NCBI RefSeq assembly: GCF_020745735.1
Contig: NW_026867508.1
Span: forward strand, 186,001-250,000
Direction of reading: 5' to 3'
Length of the DNA stretch: 64,000 bases
DNA from: Hemiscyllium ocellatum
Taxonomy: Eukaryota
Shown: in pieces, positions 2,149-38,299 of the stretch
How positions within the stretch are numbered: position 1 is the stretch's first letter
How the letters are laid out: every line of letters starts with the position of its first letter
Notes under the pieces: model-generated
What the model was told of the DNA's origin: nothing
The model's input: the letters and a program-made list of their open reading frames with translations, nothing else
Database searches by the model: none
Position numbers and translations under genes: made by a program

Positions 2149-4960
2149 TGGCGCTGGAAAAGCACAGCAGTTCAGGCAACATCCGAGGAGCAGGAAAATC
2201 GACGTTTCGGGCAAAGCCACTTCATCAGGAATACAGGCAGAGTGCCTGAAGCGTGGAGAGATAAATGAGAGGAGGGTGGGGGTGGGAAGAAAGTAGCATA
2301 GAGCACAGTGGGTGAGTGGGGGTGGGGGTGAAGGTGTTAGGTCAGGGAGGAGGGTGGGGAACGTAGCAAAGAGTACAATGGGTGGATGGGGTGGGATGAA
2401 GGTGATAGGTCAGAGAGGAGGGTGGAGTGGATAGGGGAAAAGAAGATAGGCATGTAGGACAAGTCATGAGGACAGTGCTGAGCAGGAAGTTGGAACTGGG
2501 GTGAGGTGGAGGAAGGGGAAATGAGGAAACTGGTGAAGTCCACATTGAGTCCCTAGGGTTGGAGTGTTCCGTGGCAGAAGATGAGGCGTTCTTCCTCCAG
2601 GCGTCGGGTGGTGAGAGAGCAGCGGTGAAGGAGGCCCAGGACCTCCATGTCCTTGGCAGAGTGGAAGGGGGAGTTGAAATGTTGGACCACAGGGCGGTGT
2701 GGTTGATTGGTGCGGTTGTTCCAGAGGTGCTCCCTAAAGCACTGTGCTAGGAGGCGTCCAGTCTCCCCAATGTAGAGGAGACCGCATCAGGAGCAATGAT
2801 ACAGTAAATGATATTGGTGGATGTGCAAGTAAAACTTTGATGGATGCGGAAGGCTCCAGTCGTGCCTTGGATGGAGGTGAGGGAGGAGGTGTGGGAGCAG
2901 GTTTTGCTATTTCTGCGGTGGCAGGGGAAGGTGCCAGGGCGGGAGGGTGGGTTGTTGGGGGGCGTGGACCTGAACAGGTAGTCACGAAGGGAACGGTCTT
3001 TGTGGAAGGTGGAAAGGGGTGGGGAGGGAAATATATCCCTGGTGGTGGTGTCCGTTTGGTGGTGGTGGAAATGTCGGTGGATCATTTGGTTTATGAGATG
3101 TTTGGTAGGATGGATGGTGAGCACCAGGGGGGGTTCTATCCTTGTTATGGTTGGAGGGGTGGGGTCTGAAGGCGGAAGTGTAGGATGTGGACGAGATGCG
3201 TTGGACGGCGTCTTTAGCCACGTGGGAAGGAAAATTGCGGTCTCTAAAGAAGGAGGCCATCTGGTGTGTTCTGTGGTGGAACTGGTCCTCCTCGGAGCAG
3301 ACAAGGCGGAGCCGGAGGAATTAGAAGTACGGGATGGCATTTTTGCAGGATGTAGGGTGAGAAGAGGTATTATCTAGGTAGCTGTGGGAATCGTGTTTGT
3401 AAAAGAATGTTGGTGCCAAGTCGGTCGTCATTAATAGAGATGAAGGGGTCTAGGAAGGGGAGGGAGGGGTCAGAGATGATCCAGGTAAATTTAAGGTCAA
3501 GGTGGAATGTGTTGGTGAAGTTGTTGAATTGCTCAACCTTCTCGCATGAGCACGAGGTGGTGCCAATGCAGCCATCAATGTAGCGGAGGAAGAGGTGGGG
3601 TGTGGTGCCGGTGGAATTACGGAAGATCAACTGTTCTGTGTAGCCAACAAAGAGACTAGCATAGCTGGGGCCCATACGGGTGCCCATGGCTACCCCTTTG
3701 GTCGGGAGGAAGTGGAAGGATTTGAAGGAGAAATTGTTAAGGGTGAGGACTAGTTCGGCCAAACGAATGAGAGTGTCGGTGGAGGGGTACTGTTGGGGAC
3801 GTCGGGAGAGGAAGGAGGGCTTGGACGCCCTGGTCATAGGCGGATGGAGGCGTAGAGGGATTGGATATCCATGGTGAAGATGAGGCGTTATGGGTCGGGG
3901 AAACTGAAGTCATGGAGGAGGTGGAGGGCATGGATGGTGTCTCGAGCGGATGTGGGGGTTTCCAGGACTAGGGGATATAGGACAGTGTCGAGGTAGGTAG
4001 AGATGAATTCAGTGGGGCAGGAGCATGTTGAGACAATGTGTAAGCCAGGGTTGTCAGGCTTGTGGATTTTGGGAAGGAGGTAGAACCGGGCAGTGCGGGG
4101 TTCCCGGACTATGAGGTTGTAAGCTGTGGGTGGGAGATCTCCTGAAGTGATGAGGTTCTGTGTGGTCTGGGAGATGATGATTCATTGATGGGGGCTGGGG
4201 TCATGATCGAGGGGGCGGTAGGAAGAGGTGTCCTCCAGTTGGGGTCTGTCTTCAGTGGTGTCGAGATCAGTGCACCAGACTACCACTGCACCCCCTTTAT
4301 CTACTGGCTTGATGGTGAGGTCGAGATTGGAGCAGAGGGAGTGGAGGACAGTCCGTTGTGAGGGTGAGAGGTTGGAGTGGGAGTGGGGGTAGATAGGTTG
4401 AGACGGTTAATGTCCCGGCGGCAATTGGAAATGAAGAGGTCAAGGGCGGGTAATAGGCAAGCACGTGGTGTGCAGTTGGATGGAGTGTGTTGGAGGCGGG
4501 AGAAGGTGTCCTCGGAAGGTGGGTGGGAGAACTGATTGTAAAAGTAAGCTCGGAGGTGGAGGCGGCAGAAGAAATGTTTGACATCATGGCGTGTATTAAA
4601 TTTATTGATACGTGGGCAGAGGGGTTTGGAAGTGAATCCTTTGCTGAGTACTGATCTTTCGTCCTGAGTGAATGGGAGGTCTGGACGGATGTTAGAACTC
4701 GGCAGGGCTGAGAGCTGGGATCTGGTGTCGATGTGGAGCTGGGAGTAGGGGCGGAGCCTGTAACTGGAGTGGGCGTGGTGTTAGAGGGAATTGGGTGGAG
4801 TCATGAGCAGGAGAGGTGTTCCCCATAGGGTCCTGGGGGTGGGGATGGTGACAGTGGGATCTGTGGAAGGCGTGTCAGAAGAATGCAGGTGAGTGGCGTT
4901 GTTGGGGGCGGAAGTGATGGCAAACACAGCAGTGGGGAGCTGGAAGGCCATCAGATGTGA
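2149..4960 (-). mobile_element. Penelope-like retroelement (RT + GIY-YIG endonuclease) with pLTR end, frameshifted
   Basis: Minus-strand ORFs contain GVAMGTRMGPSYASLFVGY and FLRYIDGC (RT), and CHRRNSKTC...FTCTSTNIIYCI (GIY-YIG). The terminal repeat at 2149-2235 matches the palindromic element at 8101-8284. Confidence 0.9.
2199..2230 (-). ncRNA. Minimal hammerhead ribozyme motif in the Penelope pLTR
   Basis: The minus strand reads TTC-CTGATGA-A-GTGGCTTTGCCC-GAAAC-GTC-GA: a CUGANGA/GAAA core, a stem II with one bulge, and a GUC site. Confidence 0.55.
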
Positions 4961-7900
4961 TTATCAAGATTGATAAACTTTCAGTCTACGCAGCTCCAAA
5001 CTAGATTTCTGGGAAAGTCTGCTGGTCATTTATGAAAAGTAATTAATCCTGAATACATTCGTTGGGGCATTGCAATGTTATCCAGTTGAATTCAACCAGG
5101 AAGTGAGTCATGGGCGTTAGCAGCACCAAAACCAAGAGACGTTCTAACCTGAGTGAGGTCACAATGAACTTGATACCCTTAAAAGGTTGAGGTCATCTTG
5201 AGGCTGTCTCACTGCAGTTACTTAGGTCACTATGGACCTGTCCCCACGCAGTGAGTTCATAATGGGCTTGTACCTATGCAGTGAGTGAGGTCATAATGGA
5301 AAAATTTATCTGTGACTCTGGTTTTAGACACTGTATTGTCTGGGTGAACTGAACATCTTGAAGAATAAGTTAAACAGTGTCTGTGTTCGCTCTTTTCTTC
5401 GCAACTCACTCTCTTTGCATTCAAGGTTTCTTACAGAAGTGTACTCCAAACGTTTTTGATTAAAGAAATAGTTTTCTTTTAATTGAAAGACTCTGTGTTA
5501 GTTATGTCCATGAAAGCACATTGTTCAACGTCTGACGTCGTGTTTGATATTATTAATGAGGTGAAATAGCCATATAATGGACCACGAGGAAAATTATATA
5601 CTCCACATGCTCGCTCACGTATAAACTCGCTTGAATGGATACTAGCAACTAATTCATATTCTATTCGTCTGTGCCCACTGTGGGGCTACGTGCAAATCGA
5701 GTCACTGAGCATCTGGAGACCATAGTCATGAAGAGCGTCTGTGAAGATGGATTGTGACTATAGAAACCTGGACACACCCTACATGCAGTGGTATCTGCAG
5801 AAACTGGTACACATTCCTAAACTGATTTTTACCGAAGTAGTTACGTTTGACGATGAGGAATTGTCAGGACTACATGTAAGGCAACTGTAGACATCTGTTG
5901 TGAGTACTGTTAACTCAATATAAGCAGTCTGAGTGCGAAATGTATAATGGTCTATTACAATACTAAAAGGCATGGAATCAGATAACAGTGAAAAGCTTGG
6001 AGAACTCAGTGATTACTTCCAGCTTTATCCCACTCGTGCCTTATCTGATGGTGTACTTAGATCTCGCCTTCATAGAGAAGGAAAACTAGTAGACTTACTT
6101 ATTGGAAGATTACATAACGATCCTGTCCAAAAGACCTTTAGAATATGTTAAACATTATCTCGATTTAACGATTTATATGATAAATAGGTCAGATCGTAAC
6201 AGGAATCCTGACATGGATACATAGATACTGTAATCCGTCAAATACTGAGCACTTACAACTGCAAATGAGGGACTGATATTCCAGTACAGTTACCTCACGT
6301 AACGTAGCAATACTAAGTCTGCACCACTCAGTTCTGTACCAAAACCGACGTTATCTAAGTTGATGTATGGATTTAACATATTAATACATCATCACAATAG
6401 ACTCGTAATGTGACACTATTATGAGGAAACTTTAGAGAACACGGTTTCTGCCTCAGACTTCAAGAGTTTTTTTTTCAGTACATGGCATGAAACAAGAGTG
6501 TAGCCATTTTTATTTCCTGTAGTGAAGTTAGACACAGTCCTCTAGCCTACAGCTAAGGGTACTATCTCTGAACCATAATAACCCATAAAATATTTTGAAA
6601 CCTGACACATATTAAATTGTAACCCAAGACAGGGACAGGTTTCACTTATTGGCAGATCGTGGCCTTATTTTCGTGCTTCATTTCCTTCTGTTGCCAGTAT
6701 CAGTCGACAAATGGACGAAACAGCAGCTTAGAACTTAGAACATAGGAAACAATACAGCACAGAATAGGGACTTTGGCTCTCAGTGTTGCTTTATCCTACT
6801 TTACCCTACTCTATATGAAACTCACCCTCAAACTCTTTTTTCCCCCAAACATTCACGGTGGCTATCCAAGAGTCGTTTAAATGTCCCCGATGTATCTGAC
6901 TCTTCTGGCAATTATGGTAGTATATTCCACGCACCCAACACTCTCTGTGTAAAGAAACGACCTCTGAAATCTCCCCTAAACCTTCATCCAAGCCACTTCA
7001 TGATAGCCATTTCCGTCTTTGGAGAACGTCACTGGCTATCCACTCTATCTATGCCTCACATCACAGCTTGTTTTAAATTGTGAAATCACAAGGAATCTAT
7101 GACACAGTGTACTAAGGACACAGAAGTTAAGTGACAATGCCTTATTCTAGACTGTAACTGATCGTAAGAGTATCTAAAATAAGACAATCTCTGTCCTGAA
7201 ATGCATAGATATACTTTTTGTAACTGAACACTGGTCATGCTCATTGGGCTCTACAGCCACTGACGTCATTCTCGAAACAACATTATCATATACCCTGAGA
7301 CCTGGTGAAACTTCAATGCAAGCTGCCCACATCGAGGTCAGGGATGCTACCAATGTGCAATAAGGACCCTAAATCTGAACCTTGCATTATCAGAATAAGA
7401 ACATTTAGCTGCTTTGATGGAAGACTCAAAATGTAATTTCTGCAAATGCGTAACAATCTCCGACTCAGGACAATGCGAAACTGCTGTACTGCCATCAGTC
7501 TGTGTCAAGTATATCTATAGCAAGAGTGAAATAGAATGCGTTTTACCATACACCATGAAGTACTGTCAGGATCCTCAATTCATTTTCATTTCAACTGTTC
7601 ATAGTAACACATATTCCCTATCAAACATGCAATGAAGACATTTCATTTCAGTGAACCTCAGACACCGTCTGCTCAAAATTTTCAGACTAAATCCATTTCA
7701 AAGACAAACATCGTGGCTGCTAGGCATCAAGTGCCCGTTATGAAAGAACAATCTAAGCACTGCTTTGAAAAGGAAATATTGCAGATTTATGCCTTGCATG
7801 AATGAGGACAAGTGCAAGAATTCCAAAGTTCAATTGCAGTATCAATTTCAAATACAGGTTATTACCGGTTTCAATTTCAATTCATTTCTCGTCGTCCTAC

Positions 7901-8100
7901 GTTGACGTGCTGAATTGCAGAATAGAGATGCAGTTCGTTGATTGGCTGACATGCAGAACAATGCATTTGTCAATTGATTGGGTGTTGTCTGGTGTCTCTG
8001 TCCCGAACAAAATATGAGCAGAGACACGGATATCAGGTACATCTTCAGATATTGACGAATAACCATTTCAGGAAGAACCAGTTTCTTTTGCTGGAGAACA

Positions 8101-8284
8101 GAGTTGAAAATTGTGCTGCTGGAAATACACAGCAGGCCAGGTAGCATCCGAGAAGCAGGAGAATCGATGTTTCGGGCATAAGCCCTTCTTCCTGAAGAAA
8201 GGCTTATGCGCGAAACGCCGATTCTCCTGCTCCTCGGATGCTGCCTGGCCTGCTGTGTATTTCCAGCACCATGTTTTTCAACTC
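8101..8284. mobile_element. Palindromic non-autonomous Penelope-LTR-derived element
   Basis: Near-perfect inverted repeat with arms of about 90 bp (gagttgaaaa...cccttctt / cctgaagaaagg...tttttcaactc). It contains a degenerate CTGAAGA...GAAAC motif and is absent from the paralogous unit. Confidence 0.8.
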
Positions 8285-9358
8285 CTTCAGGTAAATGAAA
8301 ACATGCGTTCAGTGAACGTTTGGAGAAACACGATTTAGTACGATCCTAACACACCGATTTGAATTCATTACTTTAATAGACACAGGACTCATTAATCTAC
8401 TGATTATCCACAGATGCCCCTCTTCATTACAGCAGGTACCTGTGAGGATCCACTTCCGTTAGATTTCGCTGGATGTCAATTGATGGAATTTGAATTAATC
8501 ATTTGATGCAGCAGTATATAGTGTGACAAAGATTGCATTTTTATTGCAAAATATATGCTTCTCGTGAAATCTGTAAACTGATAGACAAAACAGTTCGAAT
8601 TGTAAGATACAGGATGTAATAAAATTAAAATTTTCAACACGCAGAATGTTTCACTCTTAGCACCCTCTTCAGAATTGCTTTTTCACAACTTTTGTTCTGT
8701 TTGCTGTCTATAGGTAGATGTCCAAAACAGCCCATTGTGGATTTCAAATGTGTATCTTCCATTCACTCAGCATTTCCCATTACTGTTGAATAAAAAGTAT
8801 TAAACATATCGCCTGGGAGTGGATTTAAAAATGTAAGTTTGTGAGATGGCTGACTCTGTGGATTGTTCTGATGACTTTTTTCAAATCTGTGAATTGAGGA
8901 ATGAGGTATTTATTTTATATATTTGCTACTCAGTCTGCAACTCATCTAAATGGCATGGCTCTATATCTGAACTACCATACTGAAAAGCAAGTTTTATGTC
9001 ATGAATAGGTCCCTCATGAAATTTGTTTCTCTATCTATGGACAAAGGTCACTGACAGGAGGGATGAGAACGCAAGGTATTGAAAATGTTTGGTGGGAAAC
9101 TAAATCAGAAACAGAGCTTCACTGATGGGTTTGTGCAGTTCATTCCTAGCACGTTTACATCGAAGCTAACATATTGATATGGCTCTCAAAAGTAACTAAC
9201 GTTTATTTATCGTGCACTTTTTTTCCTCGGTTAAAGATTCCCCCCCCGTCCCCCCCCACCCACCTCTCTGTGACTCTTCCTCTGGGGTTGAATGGTTCTT
9301 TCTGTTTCTCCATATGAAAGAACCTTTCGGTGAGCTCGAACTGTCATGTTCAGAGAGA

Positions 9359-9857
9359 GGCTTTGAAGGGGCTGTGTCATAACTCTCAATCATAGAAATC
9401 CATGTCTGAGTCTGAGTTGATGGCCTTGTTGATTGCTTACTCTGTATTCTTCGTGTATTTAGTAAATGTGAAAGAGAATCGTTTAGCAAAGTCAGGATTC
9501 CTCTTTGCAATCTCTGCTGCAAGTATATAACTTATGTATTATAGAGGATGCCCTGAGAACTGATTGTGCCAGTAGAGGTCGGGGCTGGATCACTTGACTT
9601 CAAACTGCACGTTACTGTGACATTGCCTCTGTGTTTAACCGCTGTTTCAGGGACTGACTGTTCCACATGTCTTGATGACTCCATTCTAAGATAAACGAAA
9701 AACAGTATTCAAAATTATGTTCATTACAATCATTCGTTTCCTACTAATAGCATGTGAGTTGGAAACATCTGTGTCAGGAGGAATTGAATGTTACTGGGAA
9801 GAAACATTTACTGAGAATTTAGAGAACGATGAGCATTGGTGCCAGAAGTTTCCTCGT
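9359..9857 (-). pseudogene. TCR alpha/delta V pseudogene (leader 9812-9857, V exon about 9393-9685)
   Basis: Paralog of the V at 17592-18071. The leader start is ACG with an in-frame TAA. The V exon reads WSHQDM.EQ...GNVTVTCSLKSSDP...KRNPDFAKRFSFTFTK with stops and frameshift. The Cys104 codon and RSS heptamer are deleted. Confidence 0.9.
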
Positions 9858-11217: not shown

Positions 11218-14200
11218 TCGGTACAAGTTCAAAAGATTGGAGATGATCTCAAGAGCATGGGTTGATTGTAATTAAGTTTCGGTTTTAGAAGAGACAGTGA
11301 GAGATATAATGACTGGAGGGATAATACTGACTTAATAAAGTCACAGTTCCTTTCCAGATTCAATTATCTTATATTTTGGGTGATACATTGTCACCATTTG
11401 CTGGCGTATATTCGCTGCATCCTAGCACAGGTTGAAGCTGATATGCTACTCACGTTGTTTTGCACCTCCACGTTTTCCATGCTCTTGTTATTTTTCAACT
11501 CATGATAGTTTCCTTTGGCGACTTGACATAGATTTATTTTTTGCCCTGACATTTCAGATTATCTGTTTCGGAAAGTTAAAACTGCCCTAAATAAAACTTA
11601 TCTTTCACTGTAATAATCCTTGTTTAAAATATTTTAACAGTGGTTGGAAACGACCAAGTGCAATCAGTCAATCAAAACAGCACAATTTTGAACAGACAGG
11701 GACGTTCTCCAATCCACTTTGGTAAAGACAATAACCTGATTTTCGCTTCCTTGCTAGGATTGAAGGCCTTAAAGTCAGGTGCAATGCTAGTTTACATATT
11801 TTCTAAACAATATGTTCAGATGTCTGATTTAGCATCTTTGAAACAGGTGTGTTTCCTAGATCAAAGATCCAGATACTACCACCGCAACGTTAGAGCTGTT
11901 ATCATTTACTAATCAGCCTGCTTAGAGTGAGTACTCACATCAGAAATTCAACACGCGCCTCATGTCATAATCGCATTTGCTCAAAACCCAGAAGTTCAAC
12001 TTTGTTGTTCCTTTTTATTCGTGGAATGTTGGCATCTCTAGCTAGAGCAGTATTTATTGCTCATGTATAATTGTCCAGAGGGGAGTTAAGAATCAAGCAA
12101 ATTGCTGTGGATTTGCATGCAGATTAGACCTGGTAAGAATGGCAGTTCCCTTCTCTAAAGGACATTAGTGACTCAGATGTTTTTTTTCTGGCAATTCACA
12201 ATAGGTTCATAGTCATCATTGGGGTCCTACTTTCCGATTTTACTGGTTTCAAATTCCACCATGCTGGGATTCAAATCTGAGTCTGCAGCACACTGTCTTG
12301 TTCTCTGGATTAACAGCCCAGCGATAATCCCACTCCATCATCTGATTCCTAGGATGGGAATGGAATGTTAATTCAGGAGCAATGATTAAATAATATCAAT
12401 GCTTGATATCATGTTTGATAACATTACTGAGGTGAAATAGCCATATAAAGACAGCTCGAAAAATTAGGGTCTCCACATAAATTATCACATATAAACTCGT
12501 TTGTATGGTTATTGGTTAATATTTCATACTTTCTTCGTCTGTGTCCACAGGTGGCCTAACTGCAGGTCGAGTAACATGCGGTGGTATCTGTACTAACTGG
12601 TACAAAATCCAAAAATAATTATTAATAATGTGGTCACATTAGACGATAAAGAGGTTTGAGGACCATATATATGATTACTGCGACCACCTATAATAAGTAC
12701 AGTTATTTCAATGCAAGCAGTCTGAGAATGATTGTTATAGTGGGCTATCAGTGAATCATGAGGCACAGAATCAGGTAAATGCTAAAAGCTTGTAAAACAT
12801 CTGCGAGTATTTGCAGGTTTATTCCACTCGTGCCTTTATCTGCTTTTGTATGTTGATTCTGGCTTCACAGAAAACAAAAACTGGTAGATCTACTTATTAC
12901 AAGTTGCTTGTAACAAACAGCATCCCAAAAAACAGCTGAGAACATGAACATAGAATGCACAGCACAGTACAGGTCCTTCAACCCTTCACGTTGTGCCGAC
13001 CTTATATCCTACTCTAAGATCAAAATATGCTACATACCCTTCATTTTACTATCATCCATGTGCCTATTATTTGTTGCTTCTGTCCAAAAGACCTTTAGAA
13101 CATATTAAAAATTATTTCAAATTCACGATTTATATGGTAAATAGATTGGAAATGCATGCAGAGATAATGCAATCCACCAAATACTGTGTGCGTGGAACTG
13201 CAAATGAGGGACTGTTGTTCACAAACACTTAACTCCCATTAATTCAGTAATACTGAGTCTGCACTGTGCCAAAACAGAATTTATCAAAATCGATGGATAG
13301 ATTTATAATTTCAATACACAATCATGGTCGACTCCTTATCTAACGCTTTTATGAGAAACGCTTTGAAGAAAATCGTTTCTGCTTGAGACTTAAGCAACAT
13401 TGTATTTCGTCAAACAATTTGAACGTGCCTGGAAACAACACTTGGACCATTTGTATTTACTACGGTGAATTTTGAATACAATCCTTTTGGCCTCGTGCAC
13501 AGATCATTATCCCTGAAGTACGACAACCCAAAAAATATTTTGAAACTTTTCTGATAGTAAATAGCTACCCACGACAGAGACAGGCTGCACTCATTGCAAA
13601 CTGAGGCCTTAATTCCGTGCACAATTTGATAATATTCTTATATTCAGATAGTTCTGCAAGCTACAAATAGCCTGAACATCAGCTTAGAACACAGAACACA
13701 GAACACGGAACAGTATAGGTTCTTCGGTCCTCAACATTGTGCTGACCTTTTATCCTATTCTAAGGTCCAACTAAGTAACATACACTTAATATAATATCCA
13801 TTTTCCTAACCAAGAGTAGCTCAATGTTCCTCATGTATATGATTCCACTCCCACTGCTGACAGTGCTTTCTAAGCACCCACCACTCGCTGTGGAAAGAAT
13901 CTACCATAGACATATCCATAAGTGTCTACCCTACCCCCCCCCACCTCCCCCACCCCTCCACCCCCACACCGTCATAGCCATTTCCGCCCTGGAAAATGCA
14001 TCTGGCTATCTGCTCTGTCTATGCCTCACATCACACCTTGTTTTAAATTTGGATGCCATTATGAATCAATGATACATTGTCGTCAGTTCACAGGTGCAGA
14101 GGGACAATCTACTACCCTTGACTGTCACCTTCTATTCTGAAATGTATAGGCCCACCGTTCATCACTAATCATTGGTAGTGCTCATTGGTGCTACACTCAC

Positions 14201-15648: not shown

Positions 15649-16786
15649 AATAGACAATAGAAAATAGGTGCAGGAGTAGGCCATTCTGCCCTTCCAGCCT
15701 GCACCACCATTCAATGAGATCATGGCTGATCATCTTTAATCAGTATCCTGTTCCTGCCTTATCTCCATAACCCTTGATTCCACAATCCTTGAGAGCTCTA
15801 TCCAACTCTTTCTTAAATGAATCCAGAGACTTTGCCTCCTCTGCCCTCTGTAGTAGAGCATTCCACACAGCCACCACTCTCTGAGTGAAGAAGCTTCTCC
15901 TCATCTCTGTCCTAAATGGTCTACGCCGTATTTTTAAGCTGTGTCCTCTCGTTCGGCACTCACACATTATCGGAAACATGTTTCCTGCCTCCAGAGTGTC
16001 CAATCCTTTAATAATCTTCTATGTCTCAATCTGATCCCCTCTCAGTCTTCTGAACTCAAGGGTATACAAGCCTAGTAGCTCCAGTCTTTCAATGTAAGGT
16101 AATCCGGCCATTCTAGGAATTAACCTCGTGAACCTACGCTGCATTCCCTCAATAGCCAAAATGTCTTTTCTCAAATTTGGAAACCAGAACTGCACACAAT
16201 ACTCCAGGTATGGTCCCACCAGGGCCCTGTACAGCTGCAGAAGAACCTTTTTGCTTCTATACTCAACCCCTCTTGTTATGAAAGCCAGCATGCTATTAGC
16301 CTTCTTCACTACCTGCTGTACCTGCATGCTTACCTTCATTGACTGGCGTACAAGAACACTCAGATCTCTCTGTATTGCCCCTTTAACTAAATTGTTTCCA
16401 TTTAAGTAGTAATCTGCCTTCCTGTTCTCGCCACCAAAGTGGATAACCATACATTTATCCACATTAAACTGCATCTGCCATGCATCTGACCACTCAGTTA
16501 ACTTGTCCAGGTCACCCTGTAATCTCCTAACATCCTCATGACATTTCACCCTGCCACCCAGCTTAGTATCATCAGTAAATTTGCTAATGTTATTACTAAT
16601 ACCATCTTCTATATCATTAACATCTGTTGTAAAAAGCTGCGGTCCCAGTACTGATCCCTACGGTACTCCACTGGTCACTGCCTGCCATTCCGAAATGGAG
16701 CCGTTTATCACTACTCTTTGTTTCCTATCAGTCTACCAACTTTCAATCCAAGTTAGTACTTTGCTCCCAATACCATGCGCCCTATT
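15649..16786 (-). mobile_element. 5'-truncated CR1-type LINE (RT C-terminal half)
   Basis: ORFs 16019-16549 and 15740-16003 (LYRALVGPYLEYCVQFW, TRGHSLKIRRRPFRTEMRRSFFTQRVV) with a CTATT-repeat tail. Absent at the empty site in unit 1 (about 8556). Confidence 0.95.
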
Positions 16787-21425: not shown

Positions 21426-22329
21426 CATATGCATATACAGAAGGAAAAACATTAATAGACAAACAAAATGCACAAATTACCGTGTTATGGGCCAGAGCAA
21501 ACCCCATCAAGGTATGTTTAGAAATTAACATGTCTTCTAAGTGTTCTACATTTCAAGATTAATGGAATGCATTACGTTCCAGATGCAATTAGTTTGATGT
21601 AACTACTCGATTTTAGACAAGGTGCATTTCATTGTTATGCTGCTCCTTCATCCGGTAACTCGTGGACTGGATCATGGGGTACAGAATTTACAATAGAAGA
21701 TCAAATTGTCATACAAGTGATATGACTAGTTATCTGACGAAGAGGCAGTGCTCCCAAAGCTTGTACTTTCAAATAAACCTGTTAGGTTATAAGTTGGTAT
21801 TGTATGATTTTAATTCTGACCGCCACAGTACATCATTGGCACCTTGACATGGTGCATGTCTGTGGTAAATATTGAACATGATATCTGGAATCAGAGTGAT
21901 GTTACAGACAGACAGCAGTTGTTAAAGTAAAACATTTGGTACTGAAAGACAAACAGATAGACATGACCAGAAAATGGCTCTAAGTGAAACTTGAAGAGGG
22001 CGTTTTACTAGATGTTGACACTTAATAGTTTTCTCCTGGCTCTAAACGTAGCTCTGTGACAAGTGCTTAACTCCACATTTCATGTAATTTGAAAACGTTT
22101 CAAATTTACAGTGTCCTTTTGTTTCTTCCTACAGATATTAAAAGTCAAAATAAGCATACATCAATGAAATATGAGGAAACTGGCCTTTCCTTTAACGTTA
22201 ATCACATTTTATTAAGAGTTACACAATCCAATTGTCATGAAAACGATGCACATAAACCTACTATTCAATACCAACTATTGTTAATTTTGTTACTTTTTTT
22301 CCATTTTCTCATTGTGCAGCATTTCTGAG

Positions 22330-23990
22330 ATTCCAGTCGCTGTGAATCAGTTAAATCGATATTCTTCGTGGATTTAGTAAATGTGAAAGAGAATCGTTCA
22401 AGAAAATCAGGATTCCTCTTTACAACTGGAAGTAGCACCAACACATTATCCCCAATTGCAAAATTACAAATTTACTATTTCTTATTCGCTTCTTGTTTCA
22501 ATGTATGCTGTGATATTTTTAAATGCTGTCTAGCCAACGCCCCAGCTCTATTTAATCGTTCTCTAATATTTGTCACATAGGGCAAATGGGTGGTCTCTAT
22601 ATTCTGACTTATTAATTTCTCCTTAATCAATTTTAACCTCTTACTACATACCAGAAATTTATTTCAAATGGACCGAATTGGAACGATTCACCTGGGCAGC
22701 TCTTACCACAAAAAGTACAAATAGAACTCCCTTATCCTAATCATCTGGATAATCCTGACCATAAGCCTGCAACATGGTTTATAGTGTTGAATGCCTTCCC
22801 TCTAGCGCTCCCTGCCATTCTGGATGGTACAGAGTAGATTGGAATACCTTCATTCCCAAGTTATCCATAACCTCCTTGAATAGTCCGGATGTGAAGTTTG
22901 ATCCTTGATCTCACTGAATGCCTATTGGCAGTCTGTATCTAGTTCAAAAAATTAAGTAGTTCTTCTACACCCCTATTTTCAGTGATGTTGCATAGTGGTA
23001 TTACCTCTGGAAATCTAGTTGATACATTCAGTATTGTTAATAACTACTTATTTCCACTTTTTGTTTGAGGTAGCTGACCTACACAATCACTCAAGTTTGT
23101 TGTGAAACGTTCATCAAATGTTGGAATAGGTATTGAAGGTATAGGTTTTATTACTGCCTGTGGTTTTCAGATTAGTTGACATGTATGACACATCTGGATT
23201 AGTGGTGCTGGAAGAATGGTGCTTTATTCCTGATGCAGGGCTTTTGCCCGAAATGTCGATTTTACTGCTCCTCGAATGCTGCCTGAACTGCTGTGCTCTT
23301 CCATCACTACTAATCCAGAATCTGGTTTCCAGCATCTGCAGTCATTGTTTTTACCATGTATGACACATCTGGCAAAATTCAACTGCAGCTTTGTGTAGTC
23401 GTGGTCAGTCGAAATGTCATTGTATTTTAGCCTGTGATTTCTTCGCCACTAAATGACCTCCAAGTGGTAGCTCATGTGACACTTGCAGCACCTCCTTTTT
23501 TTTTACCCTACTGGCAAAACAAATTGGTGCACCTATGCCCATTTCTCATCTGCTTGGCTGTGTGGTGGTCTCCATTTCTTCGTTAAGGCATCATCTGTAA
23601 AATAATAGCACACAGGGATGCATTCACTTTCCTTCTCTGTAAATGACATTTGATACAACTGTTTTAAGTTCTCATCTTTCTGCTGTAATTCAATTAGCTT
23701 AACAGAGCTAAAGTTACTTGCATGTTTAGTTGTTTGCTGCTTCTCTGCCATTTTTCTGATTAGAAATGGTCTCGGATAACACTATGTCTGTTTCCATATT
23801 TGTGCCTTTTGATCCAACCTGCATCAGCTTGTGCCTCTGTGATCTTGTGATCACACAATCAGGGAATATTCCTGGGTAAACATTCTCCATGTCTTCAGTT
23901 GCTTGCATCTCCATTGGCGTTTCAACCAGTGTAGGGATCACAAAAGCCTGCTGATTAAAACAATAATGTTGATAGATGCCACCACTCGTG
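22330..23990 (-). mobile_element. Gmr1-type Gypsy integrase region, degenerate, interrupted by a pLTR-derived insert at about 23195-23345
   Basis: Minus frames give VYPGIFPDCVITRSQ and KKWRPPHSQADEKW followed by integrase core remnants similar to 42150-43250. Confidence 0.8.
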
Positions 23991-30572: not shown

Positions 30573-31079
30573 ATGTCTCCTCATATTACTTACTTATTCG
30601 TAACCGTAACAGTTCTCTTAAATGGTAAGTTGCTGAGTTTTAAAACGTACGCAATATGGGATCAGCAGTCTCCCCCTTCAGCTGTCTTTCACTGTATTAT
30701 GATACATGTCTTTAATTTGAAAATAGTTATTAGAATCGTCCATTAAATTCATTTTTTTCTAAATTTCAGTTGGTGTCAATTGTGCAAACCATGTCTCACA
30801 GAAGCCGGTTACAATAGCACAGATTGAAGGAGATTCGGTAACTATTCATTTCAGCTATTCAACCACTGTTGATTCATATTCCTTACAATTGTACCGCCAA
30901 GATCCGGGTACACCCCCGACATTCTTGATCTACATCCCTAGATACGGGGAAGTCTTCAAAGCAAAAGATGTTGGCGATCGATTTTCTGCATCTCTGGACA
31001 CTTCCAGTACGGAGGGGAATTTTACCATCAGCAGACTTCAGCTGTCTGACAACGCGATGTATTACTGTGCGCTCAGAGA
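30573..31079 (+). CDS. TCR alpha/delta V segment with open frame but Cys23>Phe and Trp41>Leu (ORF-class V; leader 30573-30624, V exon 30770-31079)
   Basis: Spliced product MSPHITYLFVTVTVLLNVGVNCANHVSQKPVTIAQIEGDSVTIHFSYSTTVDSYSLQLYRQDPGTPPTFLIYIPRYGEVFKAKDVGDRFSASLDTSSTEGNFTISRLQLSDNAMYYCALR, with canonical splice sites. Confidence 0.92.
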
Positions 31080-35251: not shown

Positions 35252-35290
35252 CATTTATGTTAAGTGAGTCCATCTGTTTGTAACACTGTG
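35252..35290 (-). other. 23-RSS
   Basis: CACAGTG + 23 nt + ACATAAATG. Confidence 0.88.
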
Positions 35291-35623
35291 CACTGGTCAC
35301 ACAGAGATAAGTGGCGGTATGACTAAATGTGGCGTCGCTCACAGTTAGGGTACGGTGTTTGTTGTCTGCACTGGTTGTAGTGGTGATCATGTTGTGCTAA
35401 TCAGCTTCTGTTGTGCTCATCACAAGACTCTAACGTGGCTGACTCAGGAGCTGTCTGTACCAACGCATCGTGATAACTGCAGTGGTGTGAAGCAGTTGAA
35501 GAACTTGGTTCCCGTTTCATTAACAACTGTCCACTGAGGACGTTGCGATACTTGATCTTCTCCAATCATTTCCAAGCAGGTCAATGTGGGAAGCAACAAA
35601 ATGACTTTGTAAATCTGAAGCAT
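35291..35623 (-). pseudogene. TCR V pseudogene with leader fused directly to V (no leader intron)
   Basis: Contiguous MLQIYKVILLLPTLTCLEMIG-EDQVSQRPQWTVVNETGTKFFNCF, then a 1-nt deletion, then TTAVITMRWYRQLLSQPR*SLVMSTTEAD*...HRTLTVSDATFSHTATYLCVTS, followed by a 23-RSS. Confidence 0.88.
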
Positions 35624-35944
35624 TGTCAAATTAATGAAAAGTAGAGTTAAGCAGCTGTTCACAGAGCTCCGTTTAGAACCAGGAAATAAATATTAAGTGT
35701 TAACAAGGATAAAAAGAACCCTCCTCAAGTCTCACTTTGAGCCAACTTCCTGTCTGAGTTAAGGAAGTGGTTGTGTCTTGTTGATTGTCTCTCTCTGTTT
35801 AGGTCACTCTGGCTCCAGTCCTCCAGTTCGATATTCATTGCAGACACTCACTGCCTTCTAGTGGAATTCTCTGGAAATTGCAAAGTAGTTTTTTTTTCAC
35901 ACTACAATGTCAACGTGCCGATGTTTGACTGGGATACACAAACT

Positions 35945-36190
35945 TAAAAATCGCACAATACCAGGTTATTGTCTAACAGTTTTATTTAAAAGCACAAGAT
36001 CTTGGAGCCCTGATTCTTCCTCAGGTAGATAGTGGCATGAGCTGCACGACATTTTGATTTTTTTTGCTGAAAATTCTGTGTTCAATGTTCCTGCCTGTCA
36101 CGAACTACCTGACGAACGAGCAGCATTCTAAAATTTTGTACTTTCATTTAAACTTGTTGGACTACAACCGGGTGTTGTATGATTTTTAAA
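35945..36190. mobile_element. Short element with inverted Penelope-pLTR-type arms (degenerate)
   Basis: Arms aaaaatcgcacaatacc...ctcaggtag and ctacctgacgaac...gttgtatgattttt are reverse complements of each other. Confidence 0.65.
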
Positions 36191-38299
36191 TTTCTCACCA
36201 CAGAGTGAGTTGCATGTGCAACAGTCTATGTTACTGAATTTGCCTTTGATAAGGTTGTGTCATGGGACGTTAAGATATTGGAATAGTTAGTTAAGCACTT
36301 CGATGGAGTAGCAGTCAAGCCAATTCTTTTATTTTATTTTATTTTCTGTCTGTATTTTAACTACAGTGTAAAAATAAAACGTGTCTTGCCTAAAGACAAG
36401 AACTTTGACCAATCGAACTACATCTGGAACGCAATGCCTTCCATTTATCTTTAAAAAAGAAAAACTTAGGATCTATGCTTACTATATTTTGATGGGGTTT
36501 GGTTTGATTTGGTCCGTCACATTGTATTTGCGCAGTTCATTTGACGACTCATGTTTTTCCTTCTGTGTATACGTATGCATATCCTCTGTGTGCATGTGCG
36601 TTTGTGTGCGCGTGTGTATGTCTTTGAATATATGCACTTTCATCTCTGTGCAAAATGGGAGATACGTTTGGCTTGAGATTGAATGATTTTCAGTGTAAAA
36701 GCATCGCTCCTTGTTGCTGCTTTCTGATTCAAATGATACAATGCCACTTTCTGCTGGTGAATCGATGCTCTTGCAAATTCAGCAGATATTTGGGAAGGTA
36801 TCACTTTTTTGTGGCGTTTTCTTGAAAATATTTTCAAGGGATATTTTCCGATTTTCGAAATGTAGTAGAGCTAGAGGTCATTATCTGAACATATCAACTT
36901 TTGAAAGAACTTTCAATTTCAGACAGAGATGAGAGAAATATTTCTTGCAGAGGGTTGTCAGTGTTTGGAATTACCTTCTGCAAAAGGCAGAGCCCACTAT
37001 TTGGTGTAAAACTTTCGTTGATTCTCAAGGTCCGAACATTAAGTAAGGGATGGACATTGATAAAGAACCTTTCATGGCTGAGAATATCTCGAATTGTGTT
37101 TCAGGTAGTGGAGCATTTCTGAAGTGCAGCCGGTTTTGCTTAGAAAATTAGGAACCTGATTTCAGTATCAGAGATAAAGATACGAATGCCGAATTGCGGT
37201 GAGACCTCATATAACATTAGAAATTGAAATGTTTAGATTTCCAAATGCAGCTGGATAATTGGAATGCCTGTACCACCAAAAGACCTGCTGTTCCTGGAAT
37301 GTCCCAAATCTTAAAGAATTTATCAAAGTTCACATCATCTCCTGATTTACCTGTCCTTGAGGCTAAATTTAACATAAAGCATTGAGCAGGTTTCTGTGTT
37401 TAATGGGAATCAATATTTATTGGAAATTAATAGTTTCCATATACAGGTAAAAATTATGAGCTGACGATATACAACTCTATCATTTAAATCCCTAACTACC
37501 ATGAACAATTATCCCGTTATGCTTGGATATAGACATGCCAGGCATTGGTATTAGGGCTGGCAGAGAAATTATTTCTTGGCAGGACAGAACTTAAACCTTG
37601 TGAGAAGGAGGCAAAAGTTTAAGCTTATTAGCCTTGTACTCACGATGGCTCCAAAGACACGGATTTGAATGAAGAACAGAATGTTATTGGATGGACTATC
37701 TTTAGGGTGGAAACGTAGCAAGAACAGTTCCTTGCCAATCTTAATTTTCTTACTAAGAAAGTTAATATACTTATGTTGATCATTGTGTGATGGGACCAGA
37801 GTGAGAAAAGGGATGCATAAAGTTCTAAATACCTTGTTCATAGCTTTGCTTCCTTGTTGTGCCATGTGACTTGTTTTTTCATACTTGAGAGTGCTTTTGT
37901 TTATATAAGTTTCATTCATCAATGACTTAGGATATGGTTACCTTTATAAGAGTCACGATTTGGCTCTAATTCATTCTGTCCTGCTTTTAATTCACTGAAA
38001 TGCATCGGTTTTTATAAAGTTAGATTCTGCTTTGTGGTTACCTCTATCCACATACTGGATCAGGGATTCGAGCATGCAGATTCGACCGATGATGGAGCAG
38101 AAACGAGGAGTGAAATCAAGGAAGCAAGCTGAGTCAAACAACTGTGTTTTCATTTTTCATGATAGATAGTTTCGATTAATAACAAGGACAAAACAATCAA
38201 CACTCCAGTAAAATTGCTCACACTCTGATTTCTTCAAGGATTGCATTCCATTCTCCCAGTTTCTCAATTACTATCGTGCATATTCGGATGATTCCCCTT

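Follow-up and report, generated by a model that had tools for sequence, protein, structure and literature searches.

The window, 64,000 nucleotides of DNA from Hemiscyllium ocellatum, carries on its minus strand a V segment, V35, which runs from the ATG at position 35623 to the end of the nonamer at 35252. These were exactly the limits given in a preliminary description of this DNA. The leader of 21 codons (MLQIYKVILLLPTLTCLEMIG; 35561..35623, minus strand) is hydrophobic and homologous to the leaders of the related proteins P0002-P0007. As had been described, the leader was joined to FR1 (EDQVSQRPQWTVVNETGTKFFNC) without an intron, and the two formed a single ORF from the ATG up to Cys23. The body of the V domain, from FR1 to Cys104 and the V end (35291..35560, minus strand), was disabled. 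Cys23 was encoded by the TGC at 35494-35492 (in FNC), WYRQ started at 35462, and YLC stood before the heptamer; the V-set landmarks Cys23, Trp41 (of WYRQ) and YxC104 were therefore present, and they were colinear with those of P0002-P0007. The Pfam V-set model gave a weak match (E 0.0038, below the cut-off) to the C-terminal piece of V35 (35 amino acids) and no match to the N-terminal piece. Since the direct Pfam match was weak, V35 was assigned as a V segment by its homology to P0002-P0007, which carry PF07686.

The last V base of V35 was 35291, and it was followed by a 23-RSS (35252..35290, minus strand), as the preliminary description had stated. In this RSS, the heptamer CACAGTG (35290-35284) was separated by 23 nt of spacer from the nonamer ACATAAATG (35260-35252). 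The heptamer was perfect, while the nonamer had 6/9 matches with A5-A7 kept. The length and much of the sequence of the spacer were common to copies from the bamboo shark, and the nonamer of V30573 (ACATAAACA), an intact neighbour in the window, was similar to that of V35.

Other V segments flank V35 in the window, and the neighbours V30573, V32131, and V17594 had split leaders, in agreement with the preliminary description. In V30573, the 52-nt L-part1 was followed by a GTAAGT donor, and an intron of 145 nt separated it from the V exon, which began at 30770. The leader exons of V32131 (at 33339) and V17594 (at 18071) were both 46 nt long. The join in V35 had been placed after 52 nt of the leader, with 11 nt on the other side; this split matched that of V30573, but the leaders of the other two are divided after 46 nt, so that the neighbours do not agree on one precise place for the former intron. 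Two further V-like sequences were observed on the minus strand: a stretch at 9395-9666, which was related to V17594, was split over two frames, and is probably a frameshifted pseudogene, and a fragment at 22310-22426, also related to V17594.

Several blocks upstream of V35 were common to it and the bamboo-shark copies, and the best conserved of them in the family was a block resembling the CTCF core (CCACTAGAAGGCAG; 35851..35864, minus strand), which lay about 230 nt before the ATG. This block was kept as CCACTAGA(A/G/T)GGCAG in 5/5 family copies from two species, and was preceded by GCAATTTCC. It was located at about 7271-7284 of the bamboo-shark contig L001, and occupied the same alignment columns in L002, L003, and L004. 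The conserved CCACTAGAGGGCAG block fits the CTCF core consensus and is a candidate CTCF site as judged from its letters. With at most one mismatch allowed, three CTCF-like sites were found in the window against 0.34 expected, and none was found upstream of the other V segments in the window.

A second conserved block, AGAGTGACCTAA, was located at 35799..35810 (minus strand; alignment columns 137-145), and an inverted pair of ETS-like words, CACTTCC ... CAGGAAGT, at 35745..35769 (minus strand). The words named in the preliminary description were all present, that is, CACTTCC at 35769-35763, CAGGAAGT at 35752-35745, and TGACCTAA at 35806-35799, the last of these within the second block. However, among these upstream words the GAGTGAC core alone (35809-35803) was invariant across the family copies. 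The ETS-like pair was conserved loosely in the bamboo-shark copies and is a putative element. Fragments of very high-copy interspersed repeats were observed at 35928-36021 and 36116-36200, with a summed contig depth of at least 1e5 in the runs of organisms A and C; these repeats begin about 300 nt before the start codon of V35, immediately past the conserved upstream region.

Lesions in V35

The stretch of leader and V domain had been described as uninterrupted, a statement that missed the pseudogene state of V35. The ATG frame ended at the TGA at 35446, and the remainder of the segment (WYRQ...TATYLC) was in a different frame that held two in-frame TAGs. The frameshift was due to a 1-nt deletion in CDR1 (35486..35487, minus strand; the exact position depends on the alignment), which appeared as the gap in TTCAC-ACCACT relative to all bamboo-shark copies. 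The tblastn match to V35 broke at 35486, the site of this deletion. The first TAG (35430..35432, minus strand) was aligned to a CAG codon (Gln) in a conserved PPQ motif, and the second (35397..35399, minus strand) to CAA/CAG, the Gln of DQ. The V-domain body lay in four pieces that together tiled the family alignment in colinear order, with no other part missing. V35 is a pseudogene with a CDR1 frameshift and two in-frame stops, and has no functional ORF. As its RSS is of roughly the same quality as the one in V30573, V35 may still rearrange, though only non-productively.

Two near-identical 14-nt patches, 19 nt apart, were observed in CDR2/FR3 of V35, at 35390-35403 and 35409-35422, and the second stop codon sits within the patch that repeats 35409-35422. 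The orthologous bamboo-shark gene had equal length at this place and no repeat. The 14-nt repeat in V35 looks like a short templated patch.

The V35 sequence was also compared with sequences from other runs. Contigs from another run of the same species (organism A) reproduced it apart from a single SNP (35547). In organism B, a contig was 99% identical to V35 and spanned the CDR1 site with no indel. A contig from organism C differed at 19/285 letters within the V segment and at 3-8% in the flanks, again with no indel at CDR1, and in this organism the V35 region was conserved no better than its flanks. The absence of an indel relative to the window at CDR1 in organisms B and C, which carry the labels of two related species, indicates that the frameshift is common to them. 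For the V domains, pN/pS was about 0.3 among the bamboo-shark paralogues, and 0.7-0.86 between V35 and its orthologue.

Intronless relatives of V35 in sharks

The 72-aa ORF of V35 had no match in a word-indexed protein search. Exhaustive phmmer with the 51-aa leader and FR1 piece found P0002, which was 54% identical to this piece from residue 1, and a profile search then found P0003-P0007. The other phmmer match, P0001, was a repetitive protein and irrelevant. P0003, P0004, P0005, and P0006 are the products of the Chiloscyllium punctatum genes chiPu_0019060 (GCC20499.1), chiPu_0019058, chiPu_0019059, and chiPu_0025496, all four of which are annotated merely as hypothetical Ig-like proteins. 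All of these (4/4) were single-exon gene models, and the three that were checked each gave a single tblastn HSP. The ORFs of P0003-P0006 stayed open across the whole RSS (CACAGTG, 23-nt spacer, and nonamer), and the nonamer was perfect (ACAAAAACC) in chiPu_0019058 and chiPu_0019060. DNA alignments of V35 with the four single-exon copies had no gap at the join of leader and V domain, and the ATG and the ORF after it were kept in all family copies aligned. The bamboo-shark genes thus resemble V35 in their single-exon leader and V domain, in a 23-RSS with a related spacer, and in the conserved upstream blocks. They differ from it in their intact ORFs and perfect nonamer; V35 is broken by a frameshift and two stops, and its nonamer is weaker. 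The preliminary description had named an intronless shark V family as one possible explanation, and these four genes with their RSSs, to one of which V35 is the positional orthologue, bear this out.

The cDNA-type proteins P0002 and P0007 start with Met and a leader homologous to that of V35. This was relevant to the possibility that the apparent leader is intron sequence or 5' flank, and that a true leader exon is spliced in from upstream. The CTTCAG right after the ATG of V35 (35621-35616) does resemble a splice acceptor. However, besides the hydrophobic leaders with which P0002 and P0007 open, the ATG and ORF are retained in every copy, and no candidate leader exon (hydrophobic, ATG...GT, phase-1) was found within 1.5 kb upstream of V35. 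An upstream leader exon has therefore next to no probability, and the preliminary description was right to read this stretch as a real leader.

The UniParc numbers of P0002 and P0007 are 31 apart, which points to one deposit. The likely source is Criscitiello et al. 2010. P0007 is a V-J-C alpha chain with J-alpha and C-alpha, and contains SKGLLSTN, the peptide of a nurse-shark alpha C primer (PMC5931798). In P0002 (UniParc UPI0001F848D4), residues 113-160 formed a J-C stretch, YFGAGTKLTVLE...KATVVCLVT, which had its best scores with the constant regions of TCR beta and lambda. Possible explanations for this J-C are a trans-locus rearrangement, a beta-locus paralogue, or a beta-like delta C of sharks.

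V35 itself was found in none of the runs recorded as RNA. Contigs that match its FR1-FR2 were, however, observed in run X20 of organism E, which is guessed to be an RNA run. The match had a loose end at 35564, and the contigs continued into a leader that was identical to the chiPu_0019059 leader in 29/30 nt, with leader and V contiguous. If the X20 run is RNA, the intronless family is expressed in organism E.

In the V tree, which had a midpoint root and included one V35 piece in the wrong frame, the seven family sequences including V35 formed a clade with 99/98 support, and the split-leader V17594 was the neighbour of this clade (87/94). All known members (7/7), from at least three species or sources, were without the intron, as would be expected if the lineage had never been split, being ancestrally intronless and older than the split leader. 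But on this tree the family nests within the split-leader TCR V segments, and the phase-1 split leader is general to Ig and TCR V genes; a 2025 paper states that all antigen-receptor genes have a split leader (PMC12227049). An ancestrally intronless family, which the preliminary description had offered, is for these reasons unlikely, and one old loss is the likelier origin.

Four colinear, inverted blastn blocks connected about 7 kb of the window with the bamboo-shark contig BEZZ01001810.1 (L001). Positions 4462-4798 of this contig corresponded to window positions 37481-37145, positions 7487-8266 to 35632-34835, positions 8914-9057 to 34191-34048, and positions 12664-13811 to 31807-30682. The last block, of 1.1 kb, lay over a V30573-like gene, and this bamboo-shark neighbour had 61% protein identity. 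Around V35 itself, the homology began about 330 nt before the ATG and ran on through the leader, V domain, and RSS to about 450 nt beyond the RSS. As judged from these alignments, V35 is the positional orthologue of the intact single-exon gene chiPu_0019060. Because this orthologue is intronless, the intronless state is older than the split from Chiloscyllium. A V segment at 15908-16147 of the same contig (minus strand) had an in-frame stop just past Cys23 (LNCN*), so the orthologous array holds pseudogenes too.

The orthologue also bears on a recent, local loss of the intron at V35, by gene conversion from cDNA of a sterile transcript or by chance deletion, that would not be a trait of the family. 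The join in V35 looks precise, and the leader has 21 codons as in the split-leader V30573, both of which would suit such an event. Nevertheless, the C. punctatum orthologue and three paralogues are intronless, so the state predates the split of the species. A recent loss in situ, as had been suggested in the preliminary description, is accordingly very improbable, and the trait was inherited.

Another explanation for the absence of the leader intron is that V35 is a processed retrocopy, a V that was copied from mRNA and inserted at another site. The precedent would be Vmuj of the marsupial TCR-mu, a germline-joined, intronless V that, as cited in PMC6170632, is attributed to retrotransposition. 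Going by that citation, Vmuj is like V35 in having no intron between leader and V, but lacks an RSS and is joined to D and J in the germline, whereas V35 is unrearranged, keeps its RSS, and lies in its native locus. The V end of V35 is followed by the 23-RSS of an unrearranged segment, the sequence on both sides is conserved over the distances given above, and the synteny with the split-leader neighbours is intact. Moreover, neither a poly(A) tract nor flanking direct repeats of a target-site duplication were found around V35. A retrocopy is hardly credible in view of these data.

Origin and meaning of the intronless state

The explanation that we prefer, with a probability of about 0.85, is that V35 is a dead member of an elasmobranch V family of the TCR alpha/delta locus, whose leader intron was lost precisely and once, in an ancestor and in place within the V array, with the upstream region and the 23-RSS kept. 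In this process, an ancestral gene of the family would have lost its leader intron exactly while staying within the array. The loss could have occurred through recombination with a reverse transcript of spliced germline RNA, by which only the intron would be removed. Such cDNA-mediated loss appears to be the simplest mechanism, and an exact genomic deletion would fit equally. The intact members would be transcribed from the upstream promoter region and joined by RAG via the 23-RSS, and would need no leader splice. V35 would have been disabled later by the 1-nt deletion in CDR1 and the two changes from Gln to stop, and would now be drifting neutrally. It is probable, on a broader level, that sharks hold a conserved and expressed TCR V family that lacks the leader intron yet has kept its promoter, RSS, and position.

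V35 shares with conventional TRAV/TRDV genes, which consist of L-part1, a phase-1 intron, a V exon, and a 23-RSS, the V-set landmarks, the 23-RSS, the location in the same array, and the leader length (about 19-21 residues). It differs from them in lacking the leader intron and in being non-functional. Germline-rearranged TCR V(D)J genes are known from the channel catfish (PMC6170632) and are, like V35, an unusual germline form of TCR V in a fish. However, the catfish genes combine a rearranged state with a leader intron, and V35 shows the opposite on both counts. No description of RSS-bearing intronless V genes was found in the literature searched, and the papers on the catfish, salmonid, and axolotl TCR loci do not mention an intronless V. 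The intronless leader-V family represents an unusual way of organising V genes, apparently not described before.

Annotation pipelines make use of the split leader, which is regarded as a universal mark of antigen-receptor V genes. If the present explanation is true, the family breaks the rule of a split leader in every antigen-receptor V gene that rearranges, and shows that neither V expression nor rearrangement needs the intron. The presence of a leader intron should not be a requirement in annotation, as the bamboo-shark genes filed as hypothetical proteins illustrate. V35 itself, being a pseudogene, adds little in function, but its positional orthology makes the loss old and single, and dates it before the split from Chiloscyllium. 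Germ-line RAG activity in sharks has already been invoked to explain germline-joined Ig genes. The intronless family, if its origin is as described here, would be consistent with germ-line editing of an antigen-receptor locus by way of reverse transcripts, and is a clean case for asking how introns leave a locus that germ cells normally keep silent.
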